Source: Laetmonice hystrix (lineage: Eukaryota). Taken from it: a stretch of 64,000 nt of DNA. Every line of letters begins with the position of its first letter. Position 1 is the first letter of the stretch. Position numbers and translations under genes: made by a program. The stretch lies in assembly GCA_965235115.1 (NCBI GenBank), contig OZ249445.1, positions 10,726,001 to 10,790,000 on the forward strand, given 5' to 3'. This document shows, piece by piece, positions 278 to 64,000 of this stretch. The notes beneath the pieces were generated by a model that was not told the DNA's origin, did no database searches, and was given only the letters and a program-made list of their open reading frames with translations.

Positions 278-3200
278 GTAAGATTGCAGAGTAAATGGTT
301 CAGATATTTGTGCTTTTTTTTATTACTTATCTTGGAGGATCTAGGATCTTAAAGAAAGGAGTATCCAAATCTCCAGTGATGTGTTTGCAAAGAGGGTCAA
401 GATTCCCCACTGTCTATCTCACAACACTAAAAACAAGTGTTCTGCATGGAAAAGTCGCCAGAAGAAGCTGGTATTCAAAAATAGTAACATTTCCTTTACT
501 TTCCCCAGATATGAATCCTCATGTTATCTAGACACTGTTCAACATTGCACAGTAAACAGTAGTCAGAGATGGAGACTGGTTATGTTCAAGGGATTGTGAA
601 ACCTTGCAACAAGGTCTTTTCCTGATGGTTTATAACTAGAAATGTTTTTCAGCGTAAGACTGTGATATTTCAGCACTACAATGACGAATTAAGACGAAGT
701 GCCATGGTCCGGCAGCTGGTAATTTTGTAGTAGTAGTAAGATGCAAAATGATTAGGAAGAGATACTCCTTTAAAATAAACGAATTTATAAAGTGATTGTG
801 ACTGATAAAGATCCAAACTGTCCATCACTAACAAGTACTGAAGCATGGAACCATGCATCATAAGTGATGTTATGAATATTGCCTTCTATGCATGGTCGAA
901 TCATTGCTTTGTGCATGATTGCACCAACAGAAGACAAAGCTTGATGGCAACCGTGGCGACAGTTACTAATACCCATCTAAGTTTTGTTTGAAAGGGTCAC
1001 AAGTAATGCCTGTGGAGTGAATGATACGGCTGGGCGAGTTCTTGTCTGTGAAGGGTTTCCAGCATTTCATACAACTCGGAGGCATGGACAGCATTTTGTA
1101 TGTCTGGGAGGCAGGGACAGCCGTGGTTCAGCTGTATGGGTATTCGGGTTGTTCCCCTCAGTCACTTCTGTATTGACTCTAAAATAAACCAGATGGTGAC
1201 GCCCCAGTCAATGAGACATTTGACTAACATTTGTTAGTTAAGCATAATGTATTTGATAGACTCTAAGGTGACTAACATAACGGCCAGTAAACTTTTAATA
1301 GCATTATAAATGGCAGACTGATGCAGAACATTTTTATTCAACTTTCATGGTATGTAGATCCAATGTGAAATAATAGATACAAAATAATTTAAGAATTATA
1401 CCCCAACATTAATCAAAGAGCACTTTATTTTTGCCGTATGAAGGTTCACCAATCGGTATGTGGCCTCCTGCTTACTTATAATCCTCAGTCCCTAGTCCCC
1501 CAGCCCCAGCTCAGGTTGACCTTTGGGAATCCGTGGAGGTTTGGAGGTTAGGAATAATGCCTCTGGTAAATGTTTTGGGGGTTTTTTTTAGTACCAGTAT
1601 TTATGCCAGATCGTAGGGGGATCTTTCTGAAATGTGCAGAAGGCACTGGTTATGTAACATATTTACAGTAAGAAAAGTTAACTTATGTGCATGTCTTTTT
1701 ACCTTATTTTACTCTTTGGATGGTATTATTATCTTGGGCTTAGAAAAGTGATCATTGGGAATGCAATGGAGTTTTTTCCTATTGGTGATGGATTTCATTT
1801 TCATCTCAAAAGAGCATTTTCGGGACATCATCAGGTGCATGTACTGGACCATTGGAGAAGGATCACATTTGTTATTATATTGATAGTGATATACATAAGC
1901 TCTGAAAAAGAAATGTTTTTTTTTAATCAAATACTAATTAAAAAAACACATCTGAAAACACAGAAGTCATTCAAAGAAACATTTACCTTAGATGGCGCTT
2001 GTTTTGAAGAGGTAATATTACTATATCCTCGGGATAGGGTAGAGCACTGTTGGTAGATCTATGGAGAGTACATCAGGAATGTTGACCTATTTTTTGTAGT
2101 GTTCTGATGGTTTTATTTGATTTGCTAGGCAGGGGATGCAGCAAGGTCAGCAACAAGAACAATCCAGAACAACTTCCTCGATACCAGCAAACAGGAGGCC
2201 ATCGACGTGTTGTTGCTAGGCAACACTTTGCGAGGAGACTTGGCTGACAAGGCCAGGGCCCTTCTCTCCAGCTCTAGTCTTCACGGTACGTTACGGAAGA
2301 TCTTTCTTACACACAAAAGTCAACTCAGACTATATGTACATGTACATTTCTTTTAGAATTTGAAGTCATAAGATATTTTGGACTTTTTTTTTTGTAGTAT
2401 GCAGGTATAGAATGCAGTTGTTGAGATTGATGTGTTTGTTGTTGTGGTCATGTAGCGGCACCCAACATCCTCAAGTTGATGATTGGACGACACCCAGACT
2501 ACACCACAGTATCCAACCTACGAGTGGCCTGTGGAACATGGAATGTCAACGGCGGCAAACATTTCCGTAGCATTGCCTACAAACACGAGTTGATCACCGA
2601 TTGGCTCTTAGACTTGCCACAGCTCACCAAGGAGAGCAGACCAGGTAACGTTTACAGGGGTCAATACCAGCTGTCGGGTGTATTCAGTTCTCAATGTTCC
2701 AGGCATTTAAATTTAAAAGTAATTAGTCAATACAAGGCAAATGTGCAAGAGTCCAAGAGCCACCTAACTCTGTCACGGTAATGGACAAAATGTTTTGTCC
2801 CTGTGAGAAAACCATTATCAAAACATTTTGTCCATTACTACGACAGAGTTAGGTAGCTGTTGGACTGTGGCACATTTGCCTCGCATTGACTAGTAAAATT
2901 AAAAGTAAGAGCTTCTTTCCTTAACCAAATCTAACATACTGCACAGTGCACATATATCTAACATTAATATTTTAGCATGAGATATCATAAATTTGCATTC
3001 ATGCCCTTGGGGAAAAGTGATGTTAATTCTGTTATTTTGAAAGACTGGGAAAAACTTATGTAGTGCTCTGTTTCTTTGATTAAAATTCTCTGTTGTGCCG
3101 TTTCTCTTGAAGACCTGATATCACCAGAATGCGACACCAACATCCCTATTGATATGTTTGCCATTGGTTTTGAGGAGATCGTGGATTTGAACGCGAGTAA

Positions 3201-6200
3201 CATCGTCAGTGCCAGGTGTGAATTCGTGACATCTATGCATTAATTATAGATTTAATTAAATTTCTCAAACTCAGTTTAATGTTGATTACTATTTATGTGA
3301 AATTTTTACTCAGAAATGTGTATGTGTCTTTCAGCACCTCAAATCAAAAAGAGTGGGGTGCATTCCTACAGAAGGCTCTCTCCAGGGACCGGAAATACAT
3401 CCTACTGACATCAGCCCAGCTTGTCGGGGTCTGCCTCTTTATCTTTGTAAGGCCCCACCTTGCTCCAATCATAAGGTAACACTCATTTTAAGTGTAATCA
3501 TACAAATAGAGACAACAAAATTGTGATATGTATTAATGGCAGAGATATCTGCCGAACGAATATTCATAGATCTATCACAGTGTTACTCTGAATGCCGTAA
3601 AGCTAAATATTTTTATGCCCAATCAGAGAATTGGGTCTTATGTTACAGTTGCCCTGAACTGTGTTGAGCGAATATTGAATATTGAAACCAAAAAAAAAAT
3701 AGAAGCCCATTATGTTCCATTTTTGTCTGTAAACTTCCAGGGATGTTGCAGTTGATACAGTTAAGACTGGCCTAGGTGGCGCCACGGGAAACAAGGGAGC
3801 AGTTGCTATTCGCTGTATGGTCCACAGCACGTCTCTGTGCTTCATCTGCAGCCATTTTGCTGCTGGACAAAAGGAGTGGAAGGAACGCAATGCAGATTTT
3901 ACTGAAATCTCTCAAAAAATATGTTTTCCAATGGTAAGTCCTTTTTTGTCTGAATACTACAGACTCTTAGAAAAAGATATGCTCCAATAATCTACTTTAA
4001 ATACTTGGAAAAGTAAGTTCCATTAAGTTAAAATAATATCAAGAGAAAGACATTGCTATAGTTGCATAAGTCTCAGAGCCATAAGTCTCAGAGCTAGAGA
4101 ACTGGATTGCTAGAGAAGTAACTTAACAAGACTGATCAAGAATGATTGTGTCCAAGACGTTTGCTTCTTTTATATGATAGATGATAGGTGAAGTCTGTAT
4201 TGATACTAGATATGGTTTTGTAGTGATTTCGGTCAGTCTTTTAGGAGTGTTACATTTCTGTAGATGTCACCCAATGTGAAGTTCTGCTGTCATGTTTTCC
4301 CAGTAGAATTTGAAACTGTTCTGACCTCAGGATATTTTTCAGATAAGTTTCTTTATCAAATTCCCTGGTGATATTTAACATAGATTTTGTGTGCACATGT
4401 ATGCAGGTTGTCAGCCTATCTATACCGGTGATGCAATTTTATGAGTTAATCATTAATGGTGAGATGTAACACTTTCTGTCTTTTTTCCTGCAGGAGTTTT
4501 GCAGGGTAGGTTTTTCTTGCATAGTTTCACGTTTTTGGTATACCCCTGACATGCCTGAACTAATGCATTGACCTGTAGCGTGATGAACCCAGATCCAGTC
4601 AAAGTCAGGCTGACCAGGCTTCAGTTAATGCCAAAGAGTCGGTATAATACTTATGTGCTTGGAACATTAATTTGGCATATGATGTATTGATTTGTGTGAA
4701 AGAAGAAATTTCTGTTGGATCATGACTTTTAGTTTGGATGAGAGCACTGCTTGTAAATGGTGCAGAACCTTACACAGCCATATGTATAGGTACTTCCTCT
4801 AGTGGAATGGGCTGCATCGTAACTTCTCCCAGAAAACCCATGAATAATGCATGCAATATGCTTGAATATACGCATATTATTATAAATGTTGTGCATGAGA
4901 CTGATAGCCTACCATCCAGAGAATTGTGTAGGCGGGGTAAAAGGTGAAATCATTAATTACAAAGTTTATAAAAGGATTGCTGGGAATGCATTATTTCATC
5001 CTGGTCATCAGCTATGAAAAAAAGACGGCGCTTTCATGTCTTTGAAAATTCTTTACATTATGGTCTCGTCCATTAGAGTATCTATTGATAGAGTTTCCAT
5101 TCTGATTTATGAATGTTTGGTGCAGTGTAGAACCCTTAGTTCATAGTTTATTGGTTTTCAGGCTTACTATGTAGGCCTACTCTTGCATGAGATACCAATA
5201 GATTCAGTTGGTGCATGTGTTTTAATCAGACAGTTATCAATTTGAAATTGTGATTTCTGTACTTGGCGTTGATCAGAATTCTGCTTTCATTTTGACCTTT
5301 AGTAGAAAATCTTGTCAGTGATAAGCACAGTAAACTGATAGAGCATAGAACTTTCTCTAGAAACGGTATTGTCTAGAAAACCACATTTGGTATTGTTGTA
5401 AATGTTTCATGGTCTTGAAAGCTCTTATCAAATGCAGCAGATTGAGCCTTTGGTGTTGACTTTAGCCAGAGGATCAACAAGGTATCATCACTGGCAAGAC
5501 TCTCACTTTGAGTACATTGTAGTTTGTGAAATGTTCACTAGGTGGTCGCTCTTGCATCACCTTCAAGTTCTCTGGTACCCAGGCACAGTGAGATATGGAG
5601 CAAGACTGTTGAGTCTTCCTCCAGGAAATTAGAAGAAGCAGACACTGGAAATTGTTTGCACTAATAAAGGTGTTTGTCTTTTCTATGTATCAGTCAGTGT
5701 TTACTGTGTTGGACACAGTACACAGTTGTTGTTACTGAGATCACGTAGCTGATCTTTGTGTCATCCAGGCCCGCTCCATCTGGTCACATGACTACATCTT
5801 CTGGTGTGGCGACTTCAACTACCGGATTGACTTGACCAATGCCGAGGTGAAGGAGCTGATATCACAGGAGAACTGGGGAGCACTGCAGGCCTGCGACCAG
5901 CTCAACAAACAGAGGGAGGCTGGCAATGCAAGTACATTCAGCTCTCTACTAATGGTTGAGAGTCAACCAGATTACAAACAGTTGTGTCCAGGGTGCTAGT
6001 GGTAGTAATATAGTTAGTAACAGATTTTATTTGGAATGCATGTATTTGGAGTTTCCTTATAATATCATAATAACAAGTTGGCATATGATGAGTATAACAT
6101 ATATAATTGCATATTATAAATACGTATCTGTATTTTGTTTTCGTCGGCAGGTGTTCAAAGGGTTTGAAGAGGGGCAAACCAATTTTGCGCCAACATATAA

Positions 6201-9200: not shown

Positions 9201-12109
9201 TTCTTGCAGGTTTGTGGACAACAACATGTTACTCACCTTTAGATTTGGCCAGATCGCACTGCAAGCAATCAAACTTAACCAGACTAAGGTGAGAATTTTA
9301 TCATTGATCAAAGATTCAAAGATCATTTTGGCAGTATGTTAGGGACTGATAAACCTATCAAAAATAAGAGAAGAAGTAGATAATGAGCTGTGCCTGTTAT
9401 TTGATTGTACAAGTATACCCACGTGGAGTAGAGTATAGCTGTCTGTATGTTAGTGTTACCTGTCCACTGACTGATGTGTGATGTCAGATTGGAGATCACA
9501 TCCTGAGTGTCCAACTCAACACGCCGCACTGGGAGGACCAGATCCAGAAGGAGATGTCACTATGTAATGCCAACACGACGGCACTCTACGATAACCTCAG
9601 CAACAGTCTGCTAACTGAGGATTTCTCCATCCCTACCATGTCCTTCGACATGGACGGTACGTACAGCATGTCGCTTTCAGTGTTTGCTGTGTGCTGTCTT
9701 ACCTTAGTACTGCATGGTAGCACTGCATCCAATGTGCTTCAAACAATAAATCAATTCTATGCAGCTTACCGGTAATATCTGACCTAATTATTCATCGAAT
9801 GATCCTGACTGGAAGCCAGGACATGAAGGGCTATGTTACCATTTATAGGAATTCTAGGGAAATTTAGTTCTTCAATTGTCAGAGAATCTTCAGATGTGGG
9901 AGACATGATTGGACCTGTTGATTGAAAATTGTTTGTCTTACACAGATGGTGATGATGAAGAGGTTGCAGGCCTGATGATAGAGGGCACCACCAGTGGAAG
10001 AAGGTCCCGTAGTGCCAGTCCTTGCCGCTCAAGTAAGTATTCATATATTCAGTAGAGATTACAATAATTTGATATTTTCATATACCACGGATCAAAGAGA
10101 TAATGACTTCACCAATGATAACACAAAATGGTGTCCTATTTACAGGAGGAAGCAGTCCTCAGCCTGGCTATGACCCATCGTCCCAGGCGATCCGACCATC
10201 TCAGCCTCCAGCCAGGCCGGCCTCTCCACGGCTACCTCCGGCACGCCCTGCTGTGTCTCCCTCTCAGCCACCGCCAGGGAATGACATCGTTGTCCCTCAG
10301 GTTGAGCCAGTGTTTGCAGCTCAGCCACCCAGCACAGAACCTCAGGTCAGTTTGATGTTACGTAAAGAGGCTACCTTTTGAAGATGCTACATGGCTCGGT
10401 ATTACATATAACAATACAGCTGATAAAGGTGTAGTGAGAGAGGCTTGGCCACATATATGATAGTCCTAGCTTCTTTCAGAATAGTAGTCTGCTCATTCAG
10501 GTATCAGGTTAAAGAAAGGTATAGAGAAGATTGTTTTTGTGGTAATAGGACCAACAAGTTATATGTTTTTTTTTTTAATCTGACGGTGACAGAAGCCAGA
10601 GAAGCCTAGGCCCCCTCGCCCCGGAGCACCTCCCAGCCGGCCACCTCCACCATCCCGTCCTCCAGGTGTTCCCGTGAGGTCAGCGGCAGGAGCAGCTGTA
10701 TGTCCTGGATCTCCCAGTAGGGGGCACCACGAACATGCACCAGGCTCCCCAGGGCGAAGTCGACCAGAAAAAACAAGACAGCCCATGCGGCCACACATGA
10801 TGCCAAAGTCCAAAAAGGTCATTAGTCCATATTCTATACAGTTCTATCCATTGTTTAGCAATCATATAAAATCAACTGACCGATTTCATATTTTTTAGGA
10901 CTATTAATTTTGAGCTTAGAATAAAATAAGATATGTGCTATTTGTTACAGATTGGACAAATAGGTCTTCCCACGAATGTTGCTCACACGGGACATGCACG
11001 AAGTGTTGAAGAGGCTGAGAGACTGATACAGAACCTGATGGCACAGACTGCATCAGTCGACAACCCGACACTGCCTGCACCTCTCCAGCCAGGTGAATAA
11101 CCTATTTTACCAAAACAAGTGAAGAAATAAACTGTTTATGAAAATGTGGACAGCTACCCGTTTATTCCTCTGTCATAAAGTTTTTTTCATTATAATGTGT
11201 ATGGTTACATTTTTCCTAGCCTCTACACCTCCTGACGGACAGTCCACAGGTTTAGAAGCACCTACGATCCCACGCACTCGGAGTGCTGTCGACTTCTCCA
11301 CAGTGAATGGTGGCTTACCCCCGAAACCATTGCCTCGTCACCAGAGTGAAGACAACCTGGCAGCTGCTGCTGAAGCAGACCAACCAAACCAGACTGAGGA
11401 GACGGCTGTGCCAACTCCTCGGCCAAGGACAAGAAAGGGCGCCAGCGAGGACAAGTCTTCTCCTGCTACGCCTGTCAATGAAATCCTAGTTCCCTCGCCT
11501 CTGGACACCTCCATCCCTGGAGTCAATGACGAACCATTGATTCCATCTCCTGAAGATGGACCAAATGTTGCCAATCGTGGGCCGCCACCTGCAGTACCTG
11601 CGGTAGGTCCAAGTGCTGACCCTCCAGTGCCCCAGTCCAGAGGGCCACCACCAGCAGTTCCTCCAGCAAACTTCTCCAGGGGAGCACCACCTCCAGTACC
11701 TCCTACCCGCCCTGTTGCCCTGACTGGATCTGCTGTAAGAGAACCCCCTGTACCTGCTCCCAGGAAGACACTGTCATGTGATGAGGATGGCACCCCATCA
11801 CCGTCCGATCAGGCTATTCCCCCTAGGCCTGCCTACGTCCCACCCCCCATAGAAACCCCGCCTCCACCCCCGAGAACAGCCTCAGACCTCGGCAGCCCGG
11901 GAATGGAGTGCCCGCCCCCACCAGATATGTCCCCACCCCCACTTCCCAATGACGGTCCGGACACTAACGGAGTATGTGACCAACCCGGAGCCACTGGTCT
12001 GCCAACTGTTCCTCCTCGGCCCAGTGTGGTTCCAATGCCCGCTCTGAACCCAACCCCTCCAGTCGCCCGGGGCCCCCCACCAATCCCACCACGTCATGAC
12101 CTTGCCTAA
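122..12109 (+). CDS. SYNJ1: Synaptojanin-1-like polyphosphoinositide phosphatase, 5'-partial spliced gene (17 exons in window)
   Basis: Exons 122-277, 2129-2285, 2456-2644, 3113-3215, 3335-3475, 3741-3933, 5769-5927, 6151-6304, 8427-8505, 8772-8984, 9210-9288, 9488-9656, 9946-10032, 10146-10345, 10593-10817, 10951-11092, 11220-12109. Intron phases all match and the frame stays open to TAA at 12107-12109. Motifs: [12 protein letters not shown] and RTIQNNF (SAC1 end), [53 protein letters not shown] (5-phosphatase), [10 protein letters not shown] (RRM-like), proline-rich tail. Confidence 0.97.
2129..2285 (+). CDS. SYNJ1: Synaptojanin exon ([32 protein letters not shown]...)
   Basis: ctag| acceptor, |gtacg donor; closely resembles the vertebrate SYNJ1 SAC1-phosphatase linker. 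Confidence 0.95.
2456..2644 (+). CDS. SYNJ1: Synaptojanin exon: start of 5-phosphatase domain ([16 protein letters not shown])
   Basis: tgtag| acceptor, |gtaac donor, phase 1/1. Confidence 0.95.
2762..2854. repeat. Intronic inverted repeat / hairpin (about 36-bp arms, about 21-nt loop)
   Basis: acctaactctgtcacggtaatggacaaaatgttttg ... caaaacattttgtccattactacgacagagttaggt. Confidence 0.85.
3113..3215 (+). CDS. SYNJ1: Synaptojanin exon ([23 protein letters not shown])
   Basis: gaag| acceptor, |gtgtg donor, conserved GFEEIVDL motif. Confidence 0.93.
3335..3475 (+). CDS. SYNJ1: Synaptojanin exon ([18 protein letters not shown]...[13 protein letters not shown])
   Basis: ttcag| acceptor, |gtaac donor, phase 2/2. 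Confidence 0.95.
3741..3933 (+). CDS. SYNJ1: Synaptojanin exon ([24 protein letters not shown]...CSHFAAGQ)
   Basis: ccag| acceptor, |gtaag donor, conserved GNKG motif. Confidence 0.96.
5769..5927 (+). CDS. SYNJ1: Synaptojanin exon ([16 protein letters not shown]...[11 protein letters not shown]), GC donor
   Basis: ccag| acceptor; catalytic GDFNYRI motif; frame joins the next exon at a |gcaagt donor. Confidence 0.92.
6151..6304 (+). CDS. SYNJ1: Synaptojanin exon (VFKGFEEG...PTYKYD...PAWTDRVLW)
   Basis: ggcag| acceptor, |gtact donor; second catalytic motif. Confidence 0.96.
7057..7092 (+). CDS. SYNJ1: Probable 36-nt cassette mini-exon of synaptojanin ([12 protein letters not shown])
   Basis: T-rich tract plus tttag| acceptor, perfect |gtgagt donor, phase 1/1, open frame; falls in a variable loop of the phosphatase domain. 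Confidence 0.6.
8427..8505 (+). CDS. SYNJ1: Synaptojanin exon ([20 protein letters not shown])
   Basis: ccag| acceptor, |gtgag donor, SDH motif. Confidence 0.95.
8772..8984 (+). CDS. SYNJ1: Synaptojanin exon: end of phosphatase and start of RRM-like domain ([10 protein letters not shown]...[10 protein letters not shown]...GEIILVR)
   Basis: acag| acceptor, |gtaag donor. Confidence 0.95.
9210..9288 (+). CDS. SYNJ1: Synaptojanin exon, RRM-like domain ([19 protein letters not shown])
   Basis: gcag| acceptor, |gtgag donor. Confidence 0.92.
9488..9656 (+). CDS. SYNJ1: Synaptojanin exon ([15 protein letters not shown]...[16 protein letters not shown])
   Basis: tcag| acceptor, |gtacg donor. Confidence 0.92.
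9946..10032 (+). CDS. SYNJ1: Synaptojanin exon, acidic/Ser-rich linker
   Basis: acag| acceptor, |gtaagt donor, phase 1/1. Confidence 0.85.
10146..10345 (+). CDS. SYNJ1: Synaptojanin exon, proline-rich tail
   Basis: acag| acceptor, |gtcagt donor; PPARP repeats. Confidence 0.88.
10593..10817 (+). CDS. SYNJ1: Synaptojanin exon, proline-rich tail ending in basic KSKK
   Basis: acag| acceptor, |gtcat donor, phase 0/0. Confidence 0.85.
10951..11092 (+). CDS. SYNJ1: Synaptojanin exon carrying CRIB-like motif ([30 protein letters not shown]...)
   Basis: ttacag| acceptor, |gtgaa donor, phase 0/1 bridges the flanking exons. Confidence 0.85.
11220..12109 (+). CDS. SYNJ1: Synaptojanin terminal coding exon, proline-rich, ends ...[11 protein letters not shown]
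   Basis: ttttcctag| acceptor, 890 nt open frame, TAA at 12107-12109. Confidence 0.92.
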
Positions 12110-16946: not shown

Positions 16947-18036
16947 GTGTCGGTGTCGGTGTCAATGATTCATTGACACCGATGACAAGTTGCGAAGTGA
17001 AAATCTGTACCACAAGACAGAGCTAAGTTACCCACGTGTAGAAAAGTTAGATGTCTACGAGAATCATGAAAAATGTTTTACATCAGCACCCAGAAGTTTC
17101 TAGAAGTCGTAGGTCTGACCAATCTGAGGCGGTTTTAGAATTTGGGGATACCTCACTGCAGGGGTGGATCCAGGGGGATAGGCTGAGCTAGGCACAGACA
17201 CATACCCCTGAGTTGACACACATCCTGTAATTCCTGTGTTCCCTATACGCAGGCACAAATATATAATATCAAGAACAAATTTGAAGCAAATCTTAAAAAA
17301 TTGTTACAAATTTATGTTGTCATTGGACTGATGGTATATGGGCCAGTAAAAGCTGTTTAACTTTAGGAAATGGAATTTTTAATTGTAAGGGCAGTATGAT
17401 GTGTATGATTATAAAACCAGTCATAAGACGCAAGGCACTGTTAATTAGCTTCATCAAGACAGGATATAAAGTTGTCCAAGATAAACCTGTATCCTTCCGT
17501 CTAAAGTCTAAACCCTGGGTCTGCTATGTAATTTGTCGATCTGTCGACAGGTGGCGTGACATGCTTGGAATAGAACCCTACGGTTTCCCCGTTCGGGGCG
17601 CTAGGTGTTCACCATAGTCTCCGATTGGACAGATCATAGGACTCGAAATCTATTTCGAGTAATGGTCAGATGTTACATGTAGGACCACACTGGAAGTGAA
17701 CGCTAGGAGAAAATTAAATAAAATTAAAAATCAATACTATCGGTCATTGTTTTTATTTTATTTGTGGGAGAGACATGATGGATATTGGATATTTGGGTAT
17801 TTTGTTTTAGTTTGAAAATCTCCTTCATTCCTTTTTCTTTCTCCACGTCCACCCTTCCCCTTGCTAGCTTCTTTTTCTTTCGATCCATAATTAAGGAACA
17901 AGACAGCAGAAGTGTAGTCTTGATCACCAGCCCCTTTTTCCCGCTAGAGGACGCTCGTCAGACCGTCACATCCTCGGCAGACTGGGGCTACATCCCCGGC
18001 TTTAATCAGTGGTAACTGACAAGTAACTGGGACGAT

Positions 18037-18145
18037 GCTAGATGGCACTGAATAGGGTGCTGCCATCTATCCTTTTAACGCTGAACTAATATTAAGTTCC
18101 AAGTCAAAACAGTAGATGGCAGCACCCCATTCCATGCCATCTAGC
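18037..18145. repeat. Inverted repeat built from four AGATGGCA cores (CTCF-like)
   Basis: gctagatggcactgaatagggtgctgccatcta ... tagatggcagcaccccattccatgccatctagc. Confidence 0.8.
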
Positions 18146-18547
18146 GGAGATTATACGAATCACGATTCATTGGTAGCGGTGGAACTTCGCTTCGGTTCGG
18201 CGCTTCAAACGTTCATAATGAGGAACGAAATAATGATTATCGCGTATCAAGAGGTACGTGTGTAGTTAAGGAATTAAAGGCTCGAATAATGATTGGGGCT
18301 TCTGCAGATTCTAAGTGAATTGTCAAACGAATCGTGTTGAACGTTTGGTGTTGATGTAAAATAATTTCACCTTCAAGGGTTCATAAAAGTGCCGCCAGCA
18401 GGCGCTGGTGTATATTGACCGTTCCGACCATTTAGCTCTATGTTCCGACCATAGACCCGAAGTAGGCCTTATGGGTGGCACGGTGGTGTGTGCGGGACCT
18501 CCCAAAACCTCTCACCACTCCAGGCAGAACTCCAATGAGCATATAGC

Positions 18548-18855
18548 ATAGGCGCCGGAACCGAGGGGGGGGGGGGGGGCAAGGGGGGTCCCCCCCCAGC
18601 TCAAAAGCTGGGGGGGGGGGGCAAATTGTTTTGAGATGGTCAGGCCGTCAGAGGGCCTAGATTTTGTTCTCAGATGCCAGGAAAACGAGTATTTGGCACC
18701 AATTTTTGACCCCCCGCCCGCAGACCCCCCGCCCGAGCTTTCGGGCCTTCGGCGCTCGCATGACCAGCATTTCAAATCTTGGAACTTGGGATAGATGATT
18801 TGGTCTCTGCCCCCCCCCCCCCACCCCCCACCTGTAAATATCTTCCGGCGCCTAT
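18548..18855. mobile_element. MITE with ataggcgccggaa terminal inverted repeats and internal poly-G/poly-C
   Basis: ataggcgccggaa at 18548-18560, ttccggcgcctat at 18843-18855; agc on both flanks. Confidence 0.8.
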
Positions 18856-19689
18856 AGCCGGCCTTGGAAGCTAGGCCGGGAAAACAAGTCTGTCAAGAGG
18901 GGAGGACAGGGACCCTTATAGCTATAGGCATATAGGCTTATTCTTATTCACCGGAGAAGAAACGCCTGGGGGGGGGGGGGGGGGGGGGGGCATTAATTGC
19001 CCCATGCTACAGGCCTGCGTCCACCTTGCAGTTAGGCTATAGGCCTAGTCACTTCTCGATAAGGCCCTGAGTATGGCCAAATTTAGGCCTAGGCCTATAG
19101 GGCCTACCAGGCACGAATCGAGGATATTTTTAAGGGGGGGGGGGCACAGGCTTTTTAAGGATAAGCATTCATTAAAACTCTTAATAGGGGGCTATAGGGC
19201 CCTATAGAACCCCGGGGTTCGGGTTGTAAGAGATGGGCTAGAGATAGGGTTACGTGATTGGGAGATTTGCGGACCGAGGTCAGGGGTTAGGCTTATAGGG
19301 TCAGATTTAGGGCAAGCAGTGCTGGCATAGTGTAGGCTATAGACTTTTACTTCTTGCAAGGGCGGGGGGGGGGGGGGGGGTGCGAAAGGTGCGTACGCCC
19401 CTCCCGCATGAGCCACCACGGTCCATGCCTACACTATGAAAAACACGGGGCTCGGAAATTCATTGAATAAATTCATTCATGGCCCTCCCCACAAGGCGTT
19501 GCATGTAGGCCTACGAAGCTTGTCAGTAGGCCCTATCACTCCCAAAGGTCCATTTTCAGAAGACCCCCCCCCCCCCCCCTCCCGAAAATCCCGCGTAGAC
19601 CCTTCAGGTCTGGAGATGTTGCCATGCATGCATGACCCCGTACGTGAAACCAGGGGGCTGTTTCACTAACAGCGACGGATGGTTGTAGG

Positions 19690-19936
19690 GCCTGCAATTT
19701 TTGGCCCGTCGCCGGTCGGAAGGTCCCACGCGCTTTGTGAAACAGCCCCCCAGGCTACGCTGGTTCCCGATCCCGTCGCTAGGTGGAGACGGGGGCGAGA
19801 CCAGCCAGTTTACCGACGCTGTGCGACTTCAAGTGGCGGATATTAGAACTAAGTCTAAGTTTCGCTCGCGGACGCGTGAAAGGAGTTCTTGCGGACAATT
19901 TTGGACATGATCTAATGATAACTATTTCAGGTAAGT
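19690..19936 (+). promoter_or_regulatory. Putative CpG-rich promoter and non-coding first exon ending at donor CAG|gtaagt (19930/19931)
   Basis: Locally dense CpG, perfect 5' splice site, no upstream acceptor or long ORF. Confidence 0.5.
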
Positions 19937-19982
19937 ATATAAAGTAGCCTATAATACGGAGTAGGCCTATTCTTAAATCCAC

Positions 19983-20205
19983 TATAGTCTGTTCGCTCTA
20001 AGAAGAGCTCGACCTCGGCCTCATTAAAGCTCTGACCTGCCCCCCTCCTCCCGTCTACCCACAGTGCACAGTTGGCGTATTACAAGTCATCACCGCCTGT
20101 CATTCAAGAATATGACCAAATTCCACGTGGTTCTGTATTACCCCAAATGAAGTAACAGCTTTAATGAGGCCGATGTCGAGCTCTTCTTAGAGCGAACAGA
20201 CTATA
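19983..20205. mobile_element. Young MITE (about 220 bp) with about 46-bp terminal inverted repeats and TA target-site duplication
   Basis: ta|tagtctgttcgctctaagaagagctcgacctcggcctcattaaagct ... agctttaatgaggccgatgtcgagctcttcttagagcgaacagacta|ta; one mismatch. Confidence 0.9.
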
Positions 20206-58379: not shown

Positions 58380-61312
58380 GTAAGTAAAATGTTTCACTTT
58401 TCTAATTTAAACTTATATTTGACTGATCGTTTAAAAATTGGTTTGTTGAAGGAAATCTAAACAGAGGGTTTATTAAGTGAGTCAGGTGTTTCTCACAGGA
58501 TGCTTTTTGTCCCCAAACGTTTGGTGTACTATAATGATTCATAAAATCGATAATATGCAACATGATTCACTGCGTTTATACTGTTTAAGTTGTTTTGATG
58601 TATAGAAAAATGCAAGGAAGGCAATTTCTCCTATATTTGTTTTTACGTGTACTTCATGGTAATCAGTGCAGTTTTCTTACAGCGACATAATGAACATGTT
58701 ATGTGAGATTTGAGTCCCTGGCCATAATTGAAGGAAAGCCGTTTGATCCTCTACAAGGCTGTATCTGATTGGTTCCTAAACAGAATAGGACATAGCAAGT
58801 CAATGCCCATCTTTTAGCCAATCTAGTCTCCTGCATGAAGATCCTCCAGAGATTTGTGTACCATTATAGGCATGATCATGAACATTGCAGACAGTATCGT
58901 TTGAAGCTGTAGTCCGCAATATTATATAGGGATAGGGTGGAGATCAAATCTCACTGCTTAAGGCATGCTGACCCGCAAGGTCCCTTTTCGGTGCCAACTT
59001 ATAAAGCTCAATTTTGGTCATAGCGGTTGGTCTGACACAAGTAAATTCTATCTTCTTTCAGTGGCTTTCCTATGCCAAATGTCGATCATTCGATCCAAGT
59101 TGCAGTTGTAACAGAAAATCACCAGTGACCCATGCAACGTTTGTTAAGAAAAAGGGTGACTGGCATGTTAGATCTTGCAGAGCAAAATTCTTGCATGACC
59201 AGAGGATACGAACCAGATAACTAATTTAAAATTCTGTATCATCTAGTGGAATTAGGCTAGTTTTCCAATACCTTCCTAGAGAGTTCTTTCCAAGTGTAAG
59301 TGCCGACGATACAATTTAACTAGGCTAATAGATGTTTCGCATATTAATTATTTATTCACCTTTGCCGCTGTCAGGTACATGTGTTCGATAATTAGACATG
59401 TGGTACACTGAAGTCGATGGCTATGCAGGTTTATAATTATAATGCTACGGCTTAAACCATGTCGCTATTACAGAAATGACAGATCTGTTTGGGAATTTGC
59501 ATCTTACATTGTGCACGTAGAAGGATAGAAGATGGCAGAAGATATGTATAAGTTTTTTTAACAGAATCTATAGAAACACTTTGGACCTTAATAAATATTA
59601 CGGCTTAATACGGCTGAGAAGTCCTCGGATGGTATTCAGAATGTCATATATACTCATATATACTCATATATACATATGTGTTTATTTCTAAGAGTAGATG
59701 TCCTTTAAGCAAGAGTAGTAGTCATGGCGTAGTTAAAGATGTTCAGAGGGTGGTTTGGGGATGTTTGCCGGGCAGGTCACCAACGGGCGATCAATGACGG
59801 CCGAGGGTGGGGCGGGGCGGGGCGGGGGGCTCCAGGCTGACAGACATGCTATTGTGTCACTCTTCATTATGATGTATCTGACGGGGCTGAAAACTTTTAA
59901 GTTGGTCAGCGTTGGCTCCCACTCACTCAGTTCACCAAATGGCAAGCCCGATTTAGTCAATGCTGTAAACCTCGTTTAAGCTAACTGCTAACATGATTGT
60001 AGCTTAGCGAAAAACTGAGAAAACTCATTTTCGCGCAAGGGCCTTTGATTTGAGCTTGATTGAGGTGGTTAAGAGCTGACGTGGCGTTGCCAGCGTGCAG
60101 AGATTGGCTACCTTGTCAGGCGTGATTTGAATATCGTCATCCCTCATTGACCAAATCATGCCACTTGTAGGCAAGTCACCAGTTTCCAGCCGGTCAATCG
60201 TTGTCCACTTTACATGCGGTGAGTAACCAAAGTCTTCCTTACCAGAGTCATCGCACATATCGCACACTGTTTCTTTGATTATCAACCAATTATTTGTAAT
60301 CCGTTTTAGCAAGGGTAGATATGTAAAACTGTATAGGCAGTCGGAACAAATGAAGAGAGATAATTGGTAAGATTCTGGTTTTCTCAAGCTCAGGGAATAT
60401 ATCAGTCCAAAAACCTGCTAAAGCATGATGGTTACGACCGAGGCGGTGACTGTTTTTTAAATATAATTTTATATATTTGTATATTTTATGAGAGTATTTG
60501 TTGGTTGATGGTTATGTTCTTAACGTTCTTTACGCCCCTTTAAGGAGAGACCAAACCATGTTTGGCTCAGATGCACGTCTCAGGTGGTACGAGCTTAGAG
60601 AGATGATCAGAGGGAGACGTCAGTGATACCACCGGATAATCCTAGTGCTGAGTGTCCTGTTCCCCGTAGATACTCGGGGAATAATCTTATATTATGTGCT
60701 GATACTGTATATTCCACACATCGGATGTTTGGCTGGCTGATCTTAGCTCAACAGATCGGCTTATCCAAGATCTCTCGAAATAGGTGTAGAATAGAGGTCA
60801 TGTCTGTACTGTCGATGTCCACAAATGTGAAGTGTCTTTTCCACCTGGGCAAAATCAGTGTACACCACTCTCAACTAGTCGTCTGGTATGTGTAAGGACA
60901 GAGGTCGAGGAGTGAGTTTTTATTAGGTATTAAGGTTGGGTTCCCAGTGTTTATCGAGTTGCCAGGGTTTCCATACTTTTATAACTTCTTTATAGAGAGT
61001 CGAGAGTACCAGTAATCGAGGTGATTAATCAATAAATCTCTTCACGACTCTTAAGGTCCTAGATAAGGTAAAGGTCGGTAGAAGTAATTATGTGGAGGTA
61101 TTATACATTTTGTACCATTATGAAGGTACAGTCCGGTCTTCCGTCCCTTCTGATCTGGACTCAATTTGAGTTCCTTACATGTCGTTTTAAGGTATAGCTA
61201 TAGTGGTGGTACAAACATATAGATATAACAGTAAACATAATAAAAAAACATATACAGAGTTTTAGTTTTACCTAGAGTCGAGAGACAGGGTGAGATATAT
61301 AGTAAACCGAAT

Positions 61313-61555
61313 ATTGGGGAACTAGGCCTTGACAATGGATTCCATAATTTTGACCTGGTTATTCTTTCATTCCCTGGTAACTTGCATTGAAGCACTAAGT
61401 TTTTTGGCATCAGGTGGAGTTTGGCTACGCTAAATTTCATTTGCCTTATCGTTGTCCTGGCATATCTTGGCCTTAGCCCATTGGTCGGCATGTTCTGCTG
61501 ACTTGTGGACTTTTCCATCGTATTAGACTGGGCCTATATAGAAATTGCTAAGGAA
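61313..61555 (-). pseudogene. NADAR (YbiA/DUF1768-like) domain pseudogene
   Basis: Frame reads FLSNFYIGPV*YDGKVHKSAEHADQWAKAKICQDNDKANEI*RSQTPPDAKKLSASMQVTRE*KNNQVKIMESIVKA*FPN. This matches the NADAR pattern LSNFY..P...DG..Y.SAEH..Q..KA....D......I....TP..AK.L........W......M..I..AKF. Four in-frame stops. Confidence 0.8.
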
Positions 61556-64000
61556 ACATTAGAAAGGCAGATACCGAAGAAGTATGGGCCACAGACTTAA
61601 CACCTGAATTCTGGACCAATGCCATTCCACATGTGTCAATTGTAACACAAGTAATACATTTTATAGTACGTAAAGAAAACCTGACATTTCCTCAATAACT
61701 GACGTGATGATGTTTATCCTTGAGGGACGCGTGATTAGAGCTTTAGAAGACCTTTGGGTTGCCAATCCGCTCCACTGTGGATAGACGTGGCAGACTTGCT
61801 GTCTGTTTGCTGTCGGTAATTCTTCAGTCATCAAAACGGGTTTATGCTGGTGAAGGTACTTACCAGAAACCGTTACCAAGGACCAAGGAATTAGTTTCTT
61901 AATGAAAGGCGGTAGATCTCTCATAATCCTCATACTGCGGAATGAGACCAATAACACAAATCGTATCAGTAAATACAGTTCTGTGCCCTTGCAGCCTTTT
62001 ACATGTATGGCTGCATTCCCTCAAAGGTATTCTGAAAGAGAACTAACTTTTTGTATTAGCTCTATTGGCCTACAGTCAGCAGAGGCATTGTGACAACAAT
62101 TTGTTTCAGTATGATAATTGGAAAATATCAATCGGTATTATAAAAGACATTGTACATTGGATAGTGATCAAATTAGATTTTGAACACTACCAAGTTCAAT
62201 ATTTGTTTATCGCTGCACTTTTGCAATTGTTATGGATACTTCACTCTTACAATGAGTTGAGTCAATGGGGGCAGGAATTGCCGTTGTACAAAAACCTAAC
62301 TGAAATCGTGTACTGCTTACTCTAAGGTAATTGCCAAGTAATGTTTGCATCCTTTATAATAGTAATTTCAGTGTATTCAGGTAATTTCGAAATAGGAATG
62401 TGCTCGACCACCATATGTCATTATTGTGGAGCTGGTTATCACCGATGCACCCAAAATGTGGAAATATTATTCCAATTAGGTCTACAAGAATCAATATAAG
62501 AAGGCCCGAGGATAATTGGGAGGATCACGTAGATTTTTACACGATCCTCTTGGTAATTAGAATGTCATCCATACAGCTTTCAACAGCAGGAACTAATACT
62601 CCATTACTCCTATGGAAGTCATTTTTTTACCACTGTAGTGGTGAACTTGCTATTTTCTGAGATGTATGGGAAACATAAATTTGTTGTTTCTGTGATTGAT
62701 GGAGATAAACCCATTAAATGTGTCCTACGACGCATCATCTCGGGTGCCCTAATAATTTAAATCGCTTCACTAATTTACTCATGTACCTATAAATGTTGAA
62801 ATATTGATGTCCCCTTCCCTTAATGTAGGCCTAGAACACATTGGATGGAATTAGGACTCGTCCATTAAATTATGAAATATAAAATGTAGGTCTCCATGAT
62901 ATGAGAAGGTCAAACGACGAGTTTATTATCACGTTGGAGCATAGTGAATAATCGAAATAGGACAGCCTGAATAATGAACTTGCATACTTTGCTGGAATCG
63001 GTGGTGAATCTAGTGTATGACCGTTCTGAAACATAAATACAATGTATGTGCGGGTTAGATATGAATGAGGAACGTCTGTAAAGAAAGAGTCCCTGTCTTG
63101 GTAATCTGGGCAGGATGTGGCTGTTAAAAAAAAGAATGATATGGTCAAAGGACACAATAATTTTAAGTAATATAGGAATTAGCTAGAGCTGTATTAAAAT
63201 GATGCCCTGGACATATTAATAACAAATCTATAGATAGTAAAATTGCATTTTTCACCAATTCCCGAAAATTCGTGGAAAAGTATTTGTTCTATAAAATATC
63301 AACAGCAACAGAAAAGAGGCCAGTGTGTGCGCCATCCAGATTCACATTGCTCAGAGATAGTAAGTAATCTTACATAGAATGATACTCTATCAGTATTTAT
63401 CATAAGATGTAAAGAGATGGAGCTCTTATCCTAATCCCTCTTGATGAAATTTGTATATGTTTCAAACTTTCATGCAAATAACATAAATTTAGTAATTAAT
63501 TATTGCAGAATAGGAAATAGGAAAATATTGGAAATTTGCAATTGTTACAATACTGGGGACAGTGATAAAAGCTTGCCAGTGGTTGCACCCCCCCGTCAGG
63601 AAGTATTTTTTCTGTTTTTCTGCTTAAAAGGTTCACACAAAACATACTCAACCCCCCCCCCCCCGCACCCTCGCCCCTTAGCACCCCCCTACCCCTACCC
63701 CCCCCCCTTGGCGCAAATCGCCCCTGCTTGGCCTTCTTTTTCTGAACTTGATTTGAAAACTCGTAAGAAGTCTAAAACATTGGAAGCTTTTATTTAAGGA
63801 CGTCGGACTCTAAGGTTGAAAACTGGCCCTAGGATTGAAAACTAGTCTAACGTACATAAACTATTACATTTTGTATATTATATAATATTATACCTATTAT
63901 AAACATTGCATGAAGAGATAGGCAAATATGAAACGTATAATCCAGCGCGTCTCCCAGCTGTACCTCTTCTGTTGAAATCAAACGTTGTCCAGTTGAAGGT

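Follow-up and report, generated by a model that had tools for sequence, protein, structure and literature searches.

A probable dead, internally deleted copy of a NADAR-carrying LINE in Laetmonice hystrix and its intact relatives

In work of 2009 attributed to Kapitonov and of 2013 attributed to Schneider, esterase (SGNH) domains were reportedly recognised in ORF1 of CR1/L2-type LINEs. The fusion of ORF1 to a NADAR domain is already known: the relevant passage of a Genome Biol article from 2025 (PMC12477816) notes for Pacific oyster Tx1-type LINEs in Repbase, in passing, that their ORF1 proteins possess YbiA-family NADAR domains, and the role guessed for them there is processing of the RNA intermediate. 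A literature search pairing DUF1768 with LINE returned nothing. NADAR from Phytophthora nicotianae and YbiA from E. coli hydrolyse guanosine-ADP-ribose (PMC11543638, PMC11125620), and NADARs linked to DarT1 are of the BC4488 type, with an Asp in the last strand, a position occupied by His in phage NADARs (PMC11543638, PMC11257639). Animals also carry NADAR proteins, and the role of NADAR in animals is an open question (PMC11125620).

The locus described here lies within a 64,000-nucleotide stretch of the Laetmonice hystrix genome (contig OZ249445.1, positions 10,726,001 to 10,790,000; hereafter the window). Positions 61109-61557 on the minus strand are very likely (probability about 0.92) to be a dead copy of a poly(A) LINE with a NADAR domain in ORF1, 5'-truncated and internally deleted. 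The features, in minus-strand order, are as follows.

61558-61960, no strand: single-copy flanking DNA outside the element, with a 98-aa ORF lacking a Pfam match
61319-61557, minus strand: NADAR half-domain piece of a LINE ORF1, N-terminal half, aa 262-340 of the 422-aa intact protein
61523-61525, minus strand: stop 1, TAA in place of the CAA (Gln) of intact copies
61430-61432, minus strand: stop 2, TAG in place of the GAG (Glu) of intact copies
61367-61369, minus strand: stop 3, TGA in place of the TGG of intact copies (a family-invariant Trp)
61322-61324, minus strand: stop 4, TAG in place of the AAG of intact copies (Lys in the invariant motif AKF)
61302-61318, minus strand: junction of 17 nt without clear match, marking an internal deletion of approximately 4.7 kb
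61109-61301, minus strand: LINE 3' UTR remnant, element nt about 5943-6191, 74-84% identical to the intact copy L051, with indels

Translation of 61555-61313 on the minus strand gives the 81-codon frame with a NADAR signature that an earlier sequence-only reading of the window had described, and its four stops are found exactly where that reading placed them. The last two had been interpreted as single-base changes (TGG to TGA at a Trp, AAG to TAG at the Lys of AKF), and comparison with the closest intact copies bears this out and extends it to the other two. A PF08719 profile search of this frame, proposed by the same reading and performed with stops masked as X, returned a NADAR match at E 1.2e-6 and 29.3 bits, a score under the Pfam curated cut-off of 35.1 bits because only half a domain (profile positions 13-101 of 163) remains. 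The fragment still contains the codons for the first catalytic Glu and the catalytic Lys, and the last-strand region of the domain has been deleted. Positions 61557-61319 align gap-free over 239 nt with an internal piece of ORF1 from the intact copies L051, L052 and L053 at 88-89% DNA identity, so that the fragment is very probably not a host-gene breakdown product, and a tblastn search of intact ORF1 against the fragment gives 81% amino acid identity (E 1.8e-33). DNA homology to the family is limited to these positions, and the last two codons (PN) of the 81-codon frame fall outside it. Within the range 61265-61960 originally assigned to the feature, the NADAR homology is therefore confined to 61557-61319, whereas 61558-61960 is unique flanking DNA that does not belong to the element. 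The setting among mobile-element debris did not hold, as the immediate flanks of the copy are single-copy DNA; searches with ORF2 and the esterase ORF as tblastn queries recovered no other remnant of the LINE family in the window, and five neighbouring window ORFs had no Pfam match.

The intact relative, a poly(A) LINE of 6.2 kb, contains three ORFs. ORF1 (422 aa in L051) possesses, in order, a coiled coil, an RRM, a CTD and a NADAR domain, the latter matching its profile at E 7.9e-30 and 104.7 bits. The second ORF (232 aa) is GDSL/SGNH-like (E 3e-5) and had no match among solved structures; it is dispensable, given that a variant missing approximately 550 bp of it is abundant. ORF2 (950 aa) contains Exo_endo_phos and RVT_1 domains (APE and RT) and aligns with human L1 ORF2p across both. 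The 3' end of L051 carries AATAAA and a poly(A) tail, and the three full-length copies (L051, L052 and L053) are 99% identical to one another. By sequence, intact ORF1 has no Pfam Transposase_22 match. In Foldseek searches, an AF2 model of ORF1 from the intact relative (pLDDT 85) matched the P. nicotianae NADAR with ADP-ribose (8BAU; E 1.8e-10), E. coli YbiA (2B3W; E 2.2e-9) and the human L1 ORF1p trimer (2YKP; E 1e-6), with 2YKP, 2YKO and 2LDY ranging from E 1e-6 to 6e-5. The modelled structure thus points to an L1-type (type II) ORF1p architecture of coiled coil, RRM and CTD.

Of 741 candidates in the genome, no fewer than 150 score above the Pfam NADAR cut-off and 146 of these are stop-free, so that the intact family members envisaged by the sequence-only reading do exist and number in the hundreds. 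These copies are dispersed over many chromosomes, and 5'-truncated copies start at various query positions (494, 502, 543, 626 and 661). Each close relative of the fragment is part of a LINE ORF1, preceded by a coiled coil and RRM and followed by an APE-RT ORF; diverged subfamilies, whose layouts were read from loci of ±1.5 kb, likewise show ORF1-NADAR followed by an APE-containing ORF2, and the same ORF1-NADAR/ORF2 layout is present in other assemblies. The family is a LINE by its APE and RT ORF2, dispersed copies, variable 5' truncation and the poly(A) tail of relatives, of which ORF2 and the tail are absent from the window copy. The proposal that the fragment belongs to a retroelement ORF1-type cargo is supported, since its nearest relatives are intact ORF1 genes of an APE-RT, poly(A) LINE and it lies 17 nt from the 3' UTR of the same LINE. 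Horizontal acquisition, the other origin suggested, is not needed for the window copy. Open frames of 1649-1660 aa containing NADAR also occur in the genome. Contigs matching the element represent a multi-copy DNA repeat, and no occurrence of the element was found in runs on record as RNA.

The deletion in the window copy spans element nt 1267 to about 5942 and removed the rest of the NADAR domain, the GDSL-like ORF and the entire ORF2. What survives (79 NADAR codons with four stops, and approximately 190 nt of 3' UTR) is without function. With its poly(A) tail missing and no convincing target-site duplication around it, the window copy gives no direct sign of insertion by target-primed reverse transcription. 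Compared with L051, the 3' UTR piece has diverged further than the 89%-identical ORF piece, and so the true parent subfamily is not among the copies compared; a 74-nt module within it (61126-61199) is 97% identical to many other copies (L033-L035). Folding of the 3' tail showed nothing special (z = -0.95). A template jump during reverse transcription is the most likely origin of the deletion: the reverse transcriptase would have copied the 3' UTR, jumped upstream on the RNA and stopped early. Two further copies carry internal deletions of their own that likewise reach into the 3' UTR, joining element nt 3611 to 5843 in L054, which is 99% identical to the intact element, and 1409 to 6134 in L055. 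An ordinary genomic deletion, following insertion of a longer 5'-truncated copy, is a possible though less probable origin: the window copy is old (11% diverged, four stops), leaving ample time for such an event, and no microhomology was seen at its junction. However, all three independent copies, one of them barely diverged, have their 3' breakpoint within the final 90-380 nt, and for this reason a jump soon after priming fits better than random deletion.

The NADAR domain of intact ORF1 belongs to the YbiA subfamily by its profile, its fold and the Glu, rather than Asp or His, in its last strand. E282, K289 and E360 correspond in alignment to E43, K50 and E125 of P. nicotianae NADAR (PMC11543638). 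In 15 diverged ORF1s sharing 23-58% identity, E282 and K289 never vary and E360 is kept in at least 90%, with Lys replacing this second catalytic Glu in subfamily L002. The invariance of the catalytic Glu and Lys and near-invariance of the second Glu across subfamilies only 23-40% identical favour catalysis, and from these residues the domain is predicted most likely to be an active glycohydrolase. It is doubtful that the domain is instead a non-catalytic module binding nucleic acid or ADP-ribose, or a metabolite N-glycosidase akin to E. coli YbiA in riboflavin damage control. Such roles would suit the position of the NADAR domain, which sits where L1 ORF1p has its RNA-binding surface, and the failure to find a writer of base ADP-ribosylation in the genome, where PF01375, PF03496, PF22596 (Scabin-like/pierisin), PF14487 (DarT) and PF01129 had no match, the control genomes being silent too. 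They sit poorly with the conserved catalytic residues and with the activity of YbiA-type NADARs, all of which, among those tested so far, hydrolyse guanosine-ADPr (PMC11125620, PMC11833690), and a riboflavin-pathway function would bring no evident benefit to a retrotransposon.

For a catalytic NADAR domain, a tentative proposal is that ORF1p would hold it on the LINE ribonucleoprotein, where it would free guanine or cytosine bases in the RNA or cDNA of the element from ADP-ribose. The domain may in this way erase base ADP-ribosylation placed by the host on retrotransposon nucleic acid, as an animal counterpart of the orphan NADARs that phages direct against DarT1; we consider this reading possible rather than probable. 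The sequence-only reading had proposed looking for an endonuclease, a reverse transcriptase and an ADP-ribosyltransferase beside intact copies: APE and RT are indeed found next to intact ORF1s, whereas base-targeting ADP-ribosyltransferase families were not detected in the genome, with control genomes also silent. An exon-by-exon search located PARP (PF00644) at about 8 loci, which shows that such a search works in this genome. Since no known base-targeting family was found, the writer under an eraser function would have to be one of these PARP-type enzymes or a member of an unknown family. Pierisin-like (CARP-1-type) guanine ADP-ribosyltransferases of shellfish were also considered as the activity countered by NADAR and found no support, PF22596 being without a match in this genome and in the equally silent control genomes.

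Two further explanations concern the fragment itself. That it is a pseudogene, processed or duplicated, derived from a cellular NADAR gene of the host and having no link to a mobile element, is very improbable: the occurrence of NADAR proteins in animals (PMC11125620) would permit it, and the window copy has no ORF2 of its own, no poly(A) tail where its 3' end was read directly and no convincing target-site duplication, the lone 7-nt word shared around this ~11% diverged copy not being adjacent to its ends. Against this, all close relatives lie within LINE ORF1s with coiled coil/RRM and APE-RT neighbours, and the fragment adjoins the LINE 3' UTR in the order and orientation of the intact element; a single-copy, intron-containing host parent, which would have spoken against mobile cargo, was not found as the nearest relative. 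Chance resemblance in non-coding DNA has a negligible likelihood despite the sub-threshold Pfam score, in view of the E-value of that match and gap-free 89% DNA identity to intact genes scoring 104.7 bits.

The dead LINE copy in the window is ordinary debris and has no importance of its own. The family, however, provides a clean natural example, abundant and apparently young, of a retrotransposon with a putative nucleic-acid ADP-ribosylation eraser. If NADAR is needed for retrotransposition, this would point to base ADP-ribosylation as a host restraint on mobile elements, and if the domain is an eraser, invertebrates would possess an undescribed anti-transposon defence based on ADP-ribosylation. 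Natural intact copies, nearly identical to each other, exist for direct testing.

Compared with human LINE-1 ORF1p (2YKP, 2YKO), the modelled ORF1 superposes over coiled coil, RRM and CTD and belongs to an element that likewise ends in a poly(A) tail and encodes an APE-RT ORF2; L1 ORF1p, in contrast, has no enzyme domain, and its Transposase_22 signature is not matched by ORF1 here. The CR1/L2-type LINEs with esterases similarly encode a hydrolase besides APE and RT, and the present element has a GDSL-like ORF as well, but here the esterase is a separate, dispensable ORF and its enzyme class differs from that of NADAR. DarT1-NADAR systems and the orphan NADARs of T4-like phages may offer a parallel in which a genetic parasite carries a possible nucleic-acid ADP-ribosylation eraser, but the last strand here has the Glu of the YbiA type, and DarT (PF14487) was not found in the genome, nor in the control genomes. 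The oyster Tx1-type LINEs, as described in the passage concerned (PMC12477816), are alike in combining a LINE ORF1 with a YbiA-type NADAR in a marine invertebrate, and by that description are set apart by the additional GDSL/SGNH-like ORF that lies between ORF1 and ORF2 in the present family. The P. nicotianae (8BAU) and E. coli (2B3W) enzymes share the fold (TM 0.72-0.77 on target), 27% identity and the same Glu/Lys/Glu set; they are free-standing cellular proteins, whereas the NADAR domain here forms the C-terminal part of an RNA-coating protein encoded by a retrotransposon.

The item near the 3' end of the window is an ordinary decayed LINE remnant carrying half of a NADAR domain. Translation of window 61555-61313 on the reverse strand gives 81 codons with an FLSNFY motif at the start, and the four stops reported by the sequence-only reading for this NADAR-signature frame were recovered exactly (61523-61525, 61430-61432, 61367-61369 and 61322-61324). 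With stops set to X, the translation hits Pfam NADAR (PF08719) with E 1.2e-6 over profile positions 13-101 of 163, confirming the assignment; as half of the domain is missing, its score of 29.3 bits falls below the curated cut-off of 35.1. Each stop differs by a single base from the codon of the closest intact copies (CAA>TAA, GAG>TAG, TGG>TGA and AAG>TAG), and the last two affect family-invariant residues, as their described conservation had implied. Codon positions 1, 2 and 3 carry 7, 5 and 14 of the 26 differences from these copies in 239 nt, a spread suggesting that the divergence stems partly from an active lineage under selection and partly from neutral decay.

A six-frame PF08719 search of the same genome (627 Mb, 35 contigs; window at C11:10726001-10790000) yielded 741 NADAR candidates. 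All of the 150 that were scored exceeded the cut-off, and 146 are stop-free; the open frames around most of them measure 400-480 aa and are spread over many chromosomes. The nearest relatives of the fragment are three copies (C3:1500094, C4:40428660 and C7:9355750) with 88-89% DNA identity, the DNA match being limited to window 61557-61319. These are 99% identical to one another over 6.18 kb, and each contains the following:

ORF1: 422 aa, NADAR at aa 258-398 (E 7.9e-30)
GDSL/SGNH-like ORF: 232 aa (E 3e-5, below the cut-off)
ORF2: 950 aa, Exo_endo_phos and RVT_1

At its 3' end the element has AATAAA and a poly(A) run, and ORF2 aligns with human L1 ORF2p over the endonuclease and reverse transcriptase (RT). 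The proposal that the NADAR frame is retroelement ORF1-type cargo is therefore supported, as its nearest relatives are ORF1s of a LINE, and the intact copies that were to be sought exist with an RT and endonuclease ORF alongside. In a variant of this young LINE about 550 bp of the GDSL-like ORF are missing (L051:7158-7707, compared with L053, C7:9352000-9361999; both belong to the three nearest relatives), and the contig joint 7154>7708 occurs in three runs. The depth of this joint is no lower than that of the form with the esterase, so the element seems able to spread without that ORF.

Aligned to the intact element (L051 numbering), the window copy consists of the following:

61557-61319 (-): LINE ORF1/NADAR piece, element nt 1028-1266, 89% identity, gapless
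between 61319 and 61301 (-): junction, 17 nt without match
61301-61109 (-): 3' UTR piece, element nt about 5943-6191, 74-84% identity, with indels

The remaining NADAR, the GDSL-like ORF and the entire ORF2, about 4.7 kb, are gone, and tblastn found no other pieces of them in the whole window. The flanks (61558-62050 and 60300-61110) are single-copy in the genome, so the window copy, about 450 bp long, is an isolated insertion and, contrary to what had been supposed, does not lie among mobile-element debris. The range originally proposed, 61265-61960, holds for its lower part; the upper 400 bp are unrelated to the LINE copy and contain a 98-aa ORF with no Pfam match. The copy's end lacks a poly(A) tail, and the sequence around it shows no convincing target-site duplication.

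A 74-nt module of the 3' UTR (window 61126-61199, reverse strand) is 97% identical in many copies (among them L033, L034 and L035), against only 74% for the adjoining UTR. It may be an RT recognition part or a SINE-shared tail, and folding predictions show nothing special for it (z -0.95). Elsewhere, window 63582-63705 (124 nt) is an unrelated short repeat with 77% identity to L054:2869-2988, beyond the LINE copy at that locus, and GC reaches 0.51-0.53 at 10001-12000 and 18001-20000 against a background of about 0.41, which may mark exons or a CpG-rich feature.

Comparable internal deletions occur in two other copies: L054 (C1:61608000-61617000) joins element nt 3611 to 5843 between blocks 98.5-99.7% identical to the intact element, and L055 (C12:21874000-21883999) joins nt 1409 to 6134. 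The two are independent, and both have their 3' breakpoint within the 3' UTR, as in the window copy. This clustering probably reflects a template jump, in which RT would copy the 3' end and then jump upstream on the template, leaving an internal deletion. A later genomic deletion is possible for the window copy, which is old. L055 retains almost the entire 5' region, ORF1 and the final 90 nt, an ORF1-only layout that recalls HAL1-type half-LINEs.

Family ORF1s only 23-58% identical to that of L051 retain the NADAR hallmark residues: there is no variation at E282, Q286, K289, W324, K339-F340, D364, G368 or G370, and at least 90% keep E360. Alignment to the structure 8BAU and published mutagenesis (PMC11543638) map E282 and K289 to the conserved catalytic Glu and Lys, and E360 to the Glu in the last strand by which the YbiA subfamily is defined. 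The L002 subfamily (C5:34541996-34545436, ORF 595-1953) has Lys in place of this last-strand catalytic Glu, and despite that its NADAR profile score is among the best. In several diverged subfamilies ORF1-NADAR is followed by an APE ORF2, directly or via a GDSL-like or uncharacterised small ORF. Proteins 28-41% identical in other public assemblies have the same APE/RT downstream, with a GDSL-like ORF in one case. One relative from another assembly, P0021 (551 aa), combines NADAR with a zf-CCHC knuckle (PF00098), suggesting that NADAR has joined a CCHC-type LINE ORF1 too. Two open frames that greatly exceed ORF1 in length, one of 1660 aa (NADAR at G000:C1:23020367-23020792) and one of 1649 aa (NADAR at G000:C8:28856722-28857147), also contain NADAR and could be ORF1-ORF2 fusions or a different architecture.

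From 15 natural family members, AlphaFold2 modelled ORF1 with a pLDDT of 85. Structures that match this model include 8BAU, the NADAR of P. nicotianae with ADP-ribose (E 1.8e-10), YbiA of E. coli (2B3W) and 2YKP, the trimer of human LINE-1 ORF1p (E 1e-6). ORF1p is thus modelled as an L1-type protein of coiled coil, RRM and CTD that carries NADAR at its C-terminus.

According to published work, NADARs strip ADP-ribose from cytidine and from guanosine, the latter in DNA as well as RNA, and leave ADP-ribosylated phosphate ends untouched; one animal enzyme, from a sponge, has been assayed (PMC11543638, PMC11125620, PMC11833690, PMC12945103). As the coat protein of the element's own RNA, ORF1p would let a fused NADAR act on the LINE ribonucleoprotein, where the domain's role would most plausibly be to clear base ADP-ribosylation from element RNA or new cDNA. 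The genome has about 8 loci with PARP domains, and gave no match to the writers DarT, Scabin-like/pierisin, Enterotoxin_a, ADPrib_exo_Tox or ART, a blank that is weak because control genomes were silent too. A counter-defence role for the LINE NADAR is a tentative hypothesis, and rather unlikely.

The interest lies in the LINE family behind the window copy. No other paper in the literature searched links a NADAR domain with ORF1, and the fusion itself has a precedent: one passage of a 2025 study of transposons in brown algae remarks that several oyster Tx1 LINE ORF1s in Repbase appear to contain a YbiA-family NADAR (PMC12477816).
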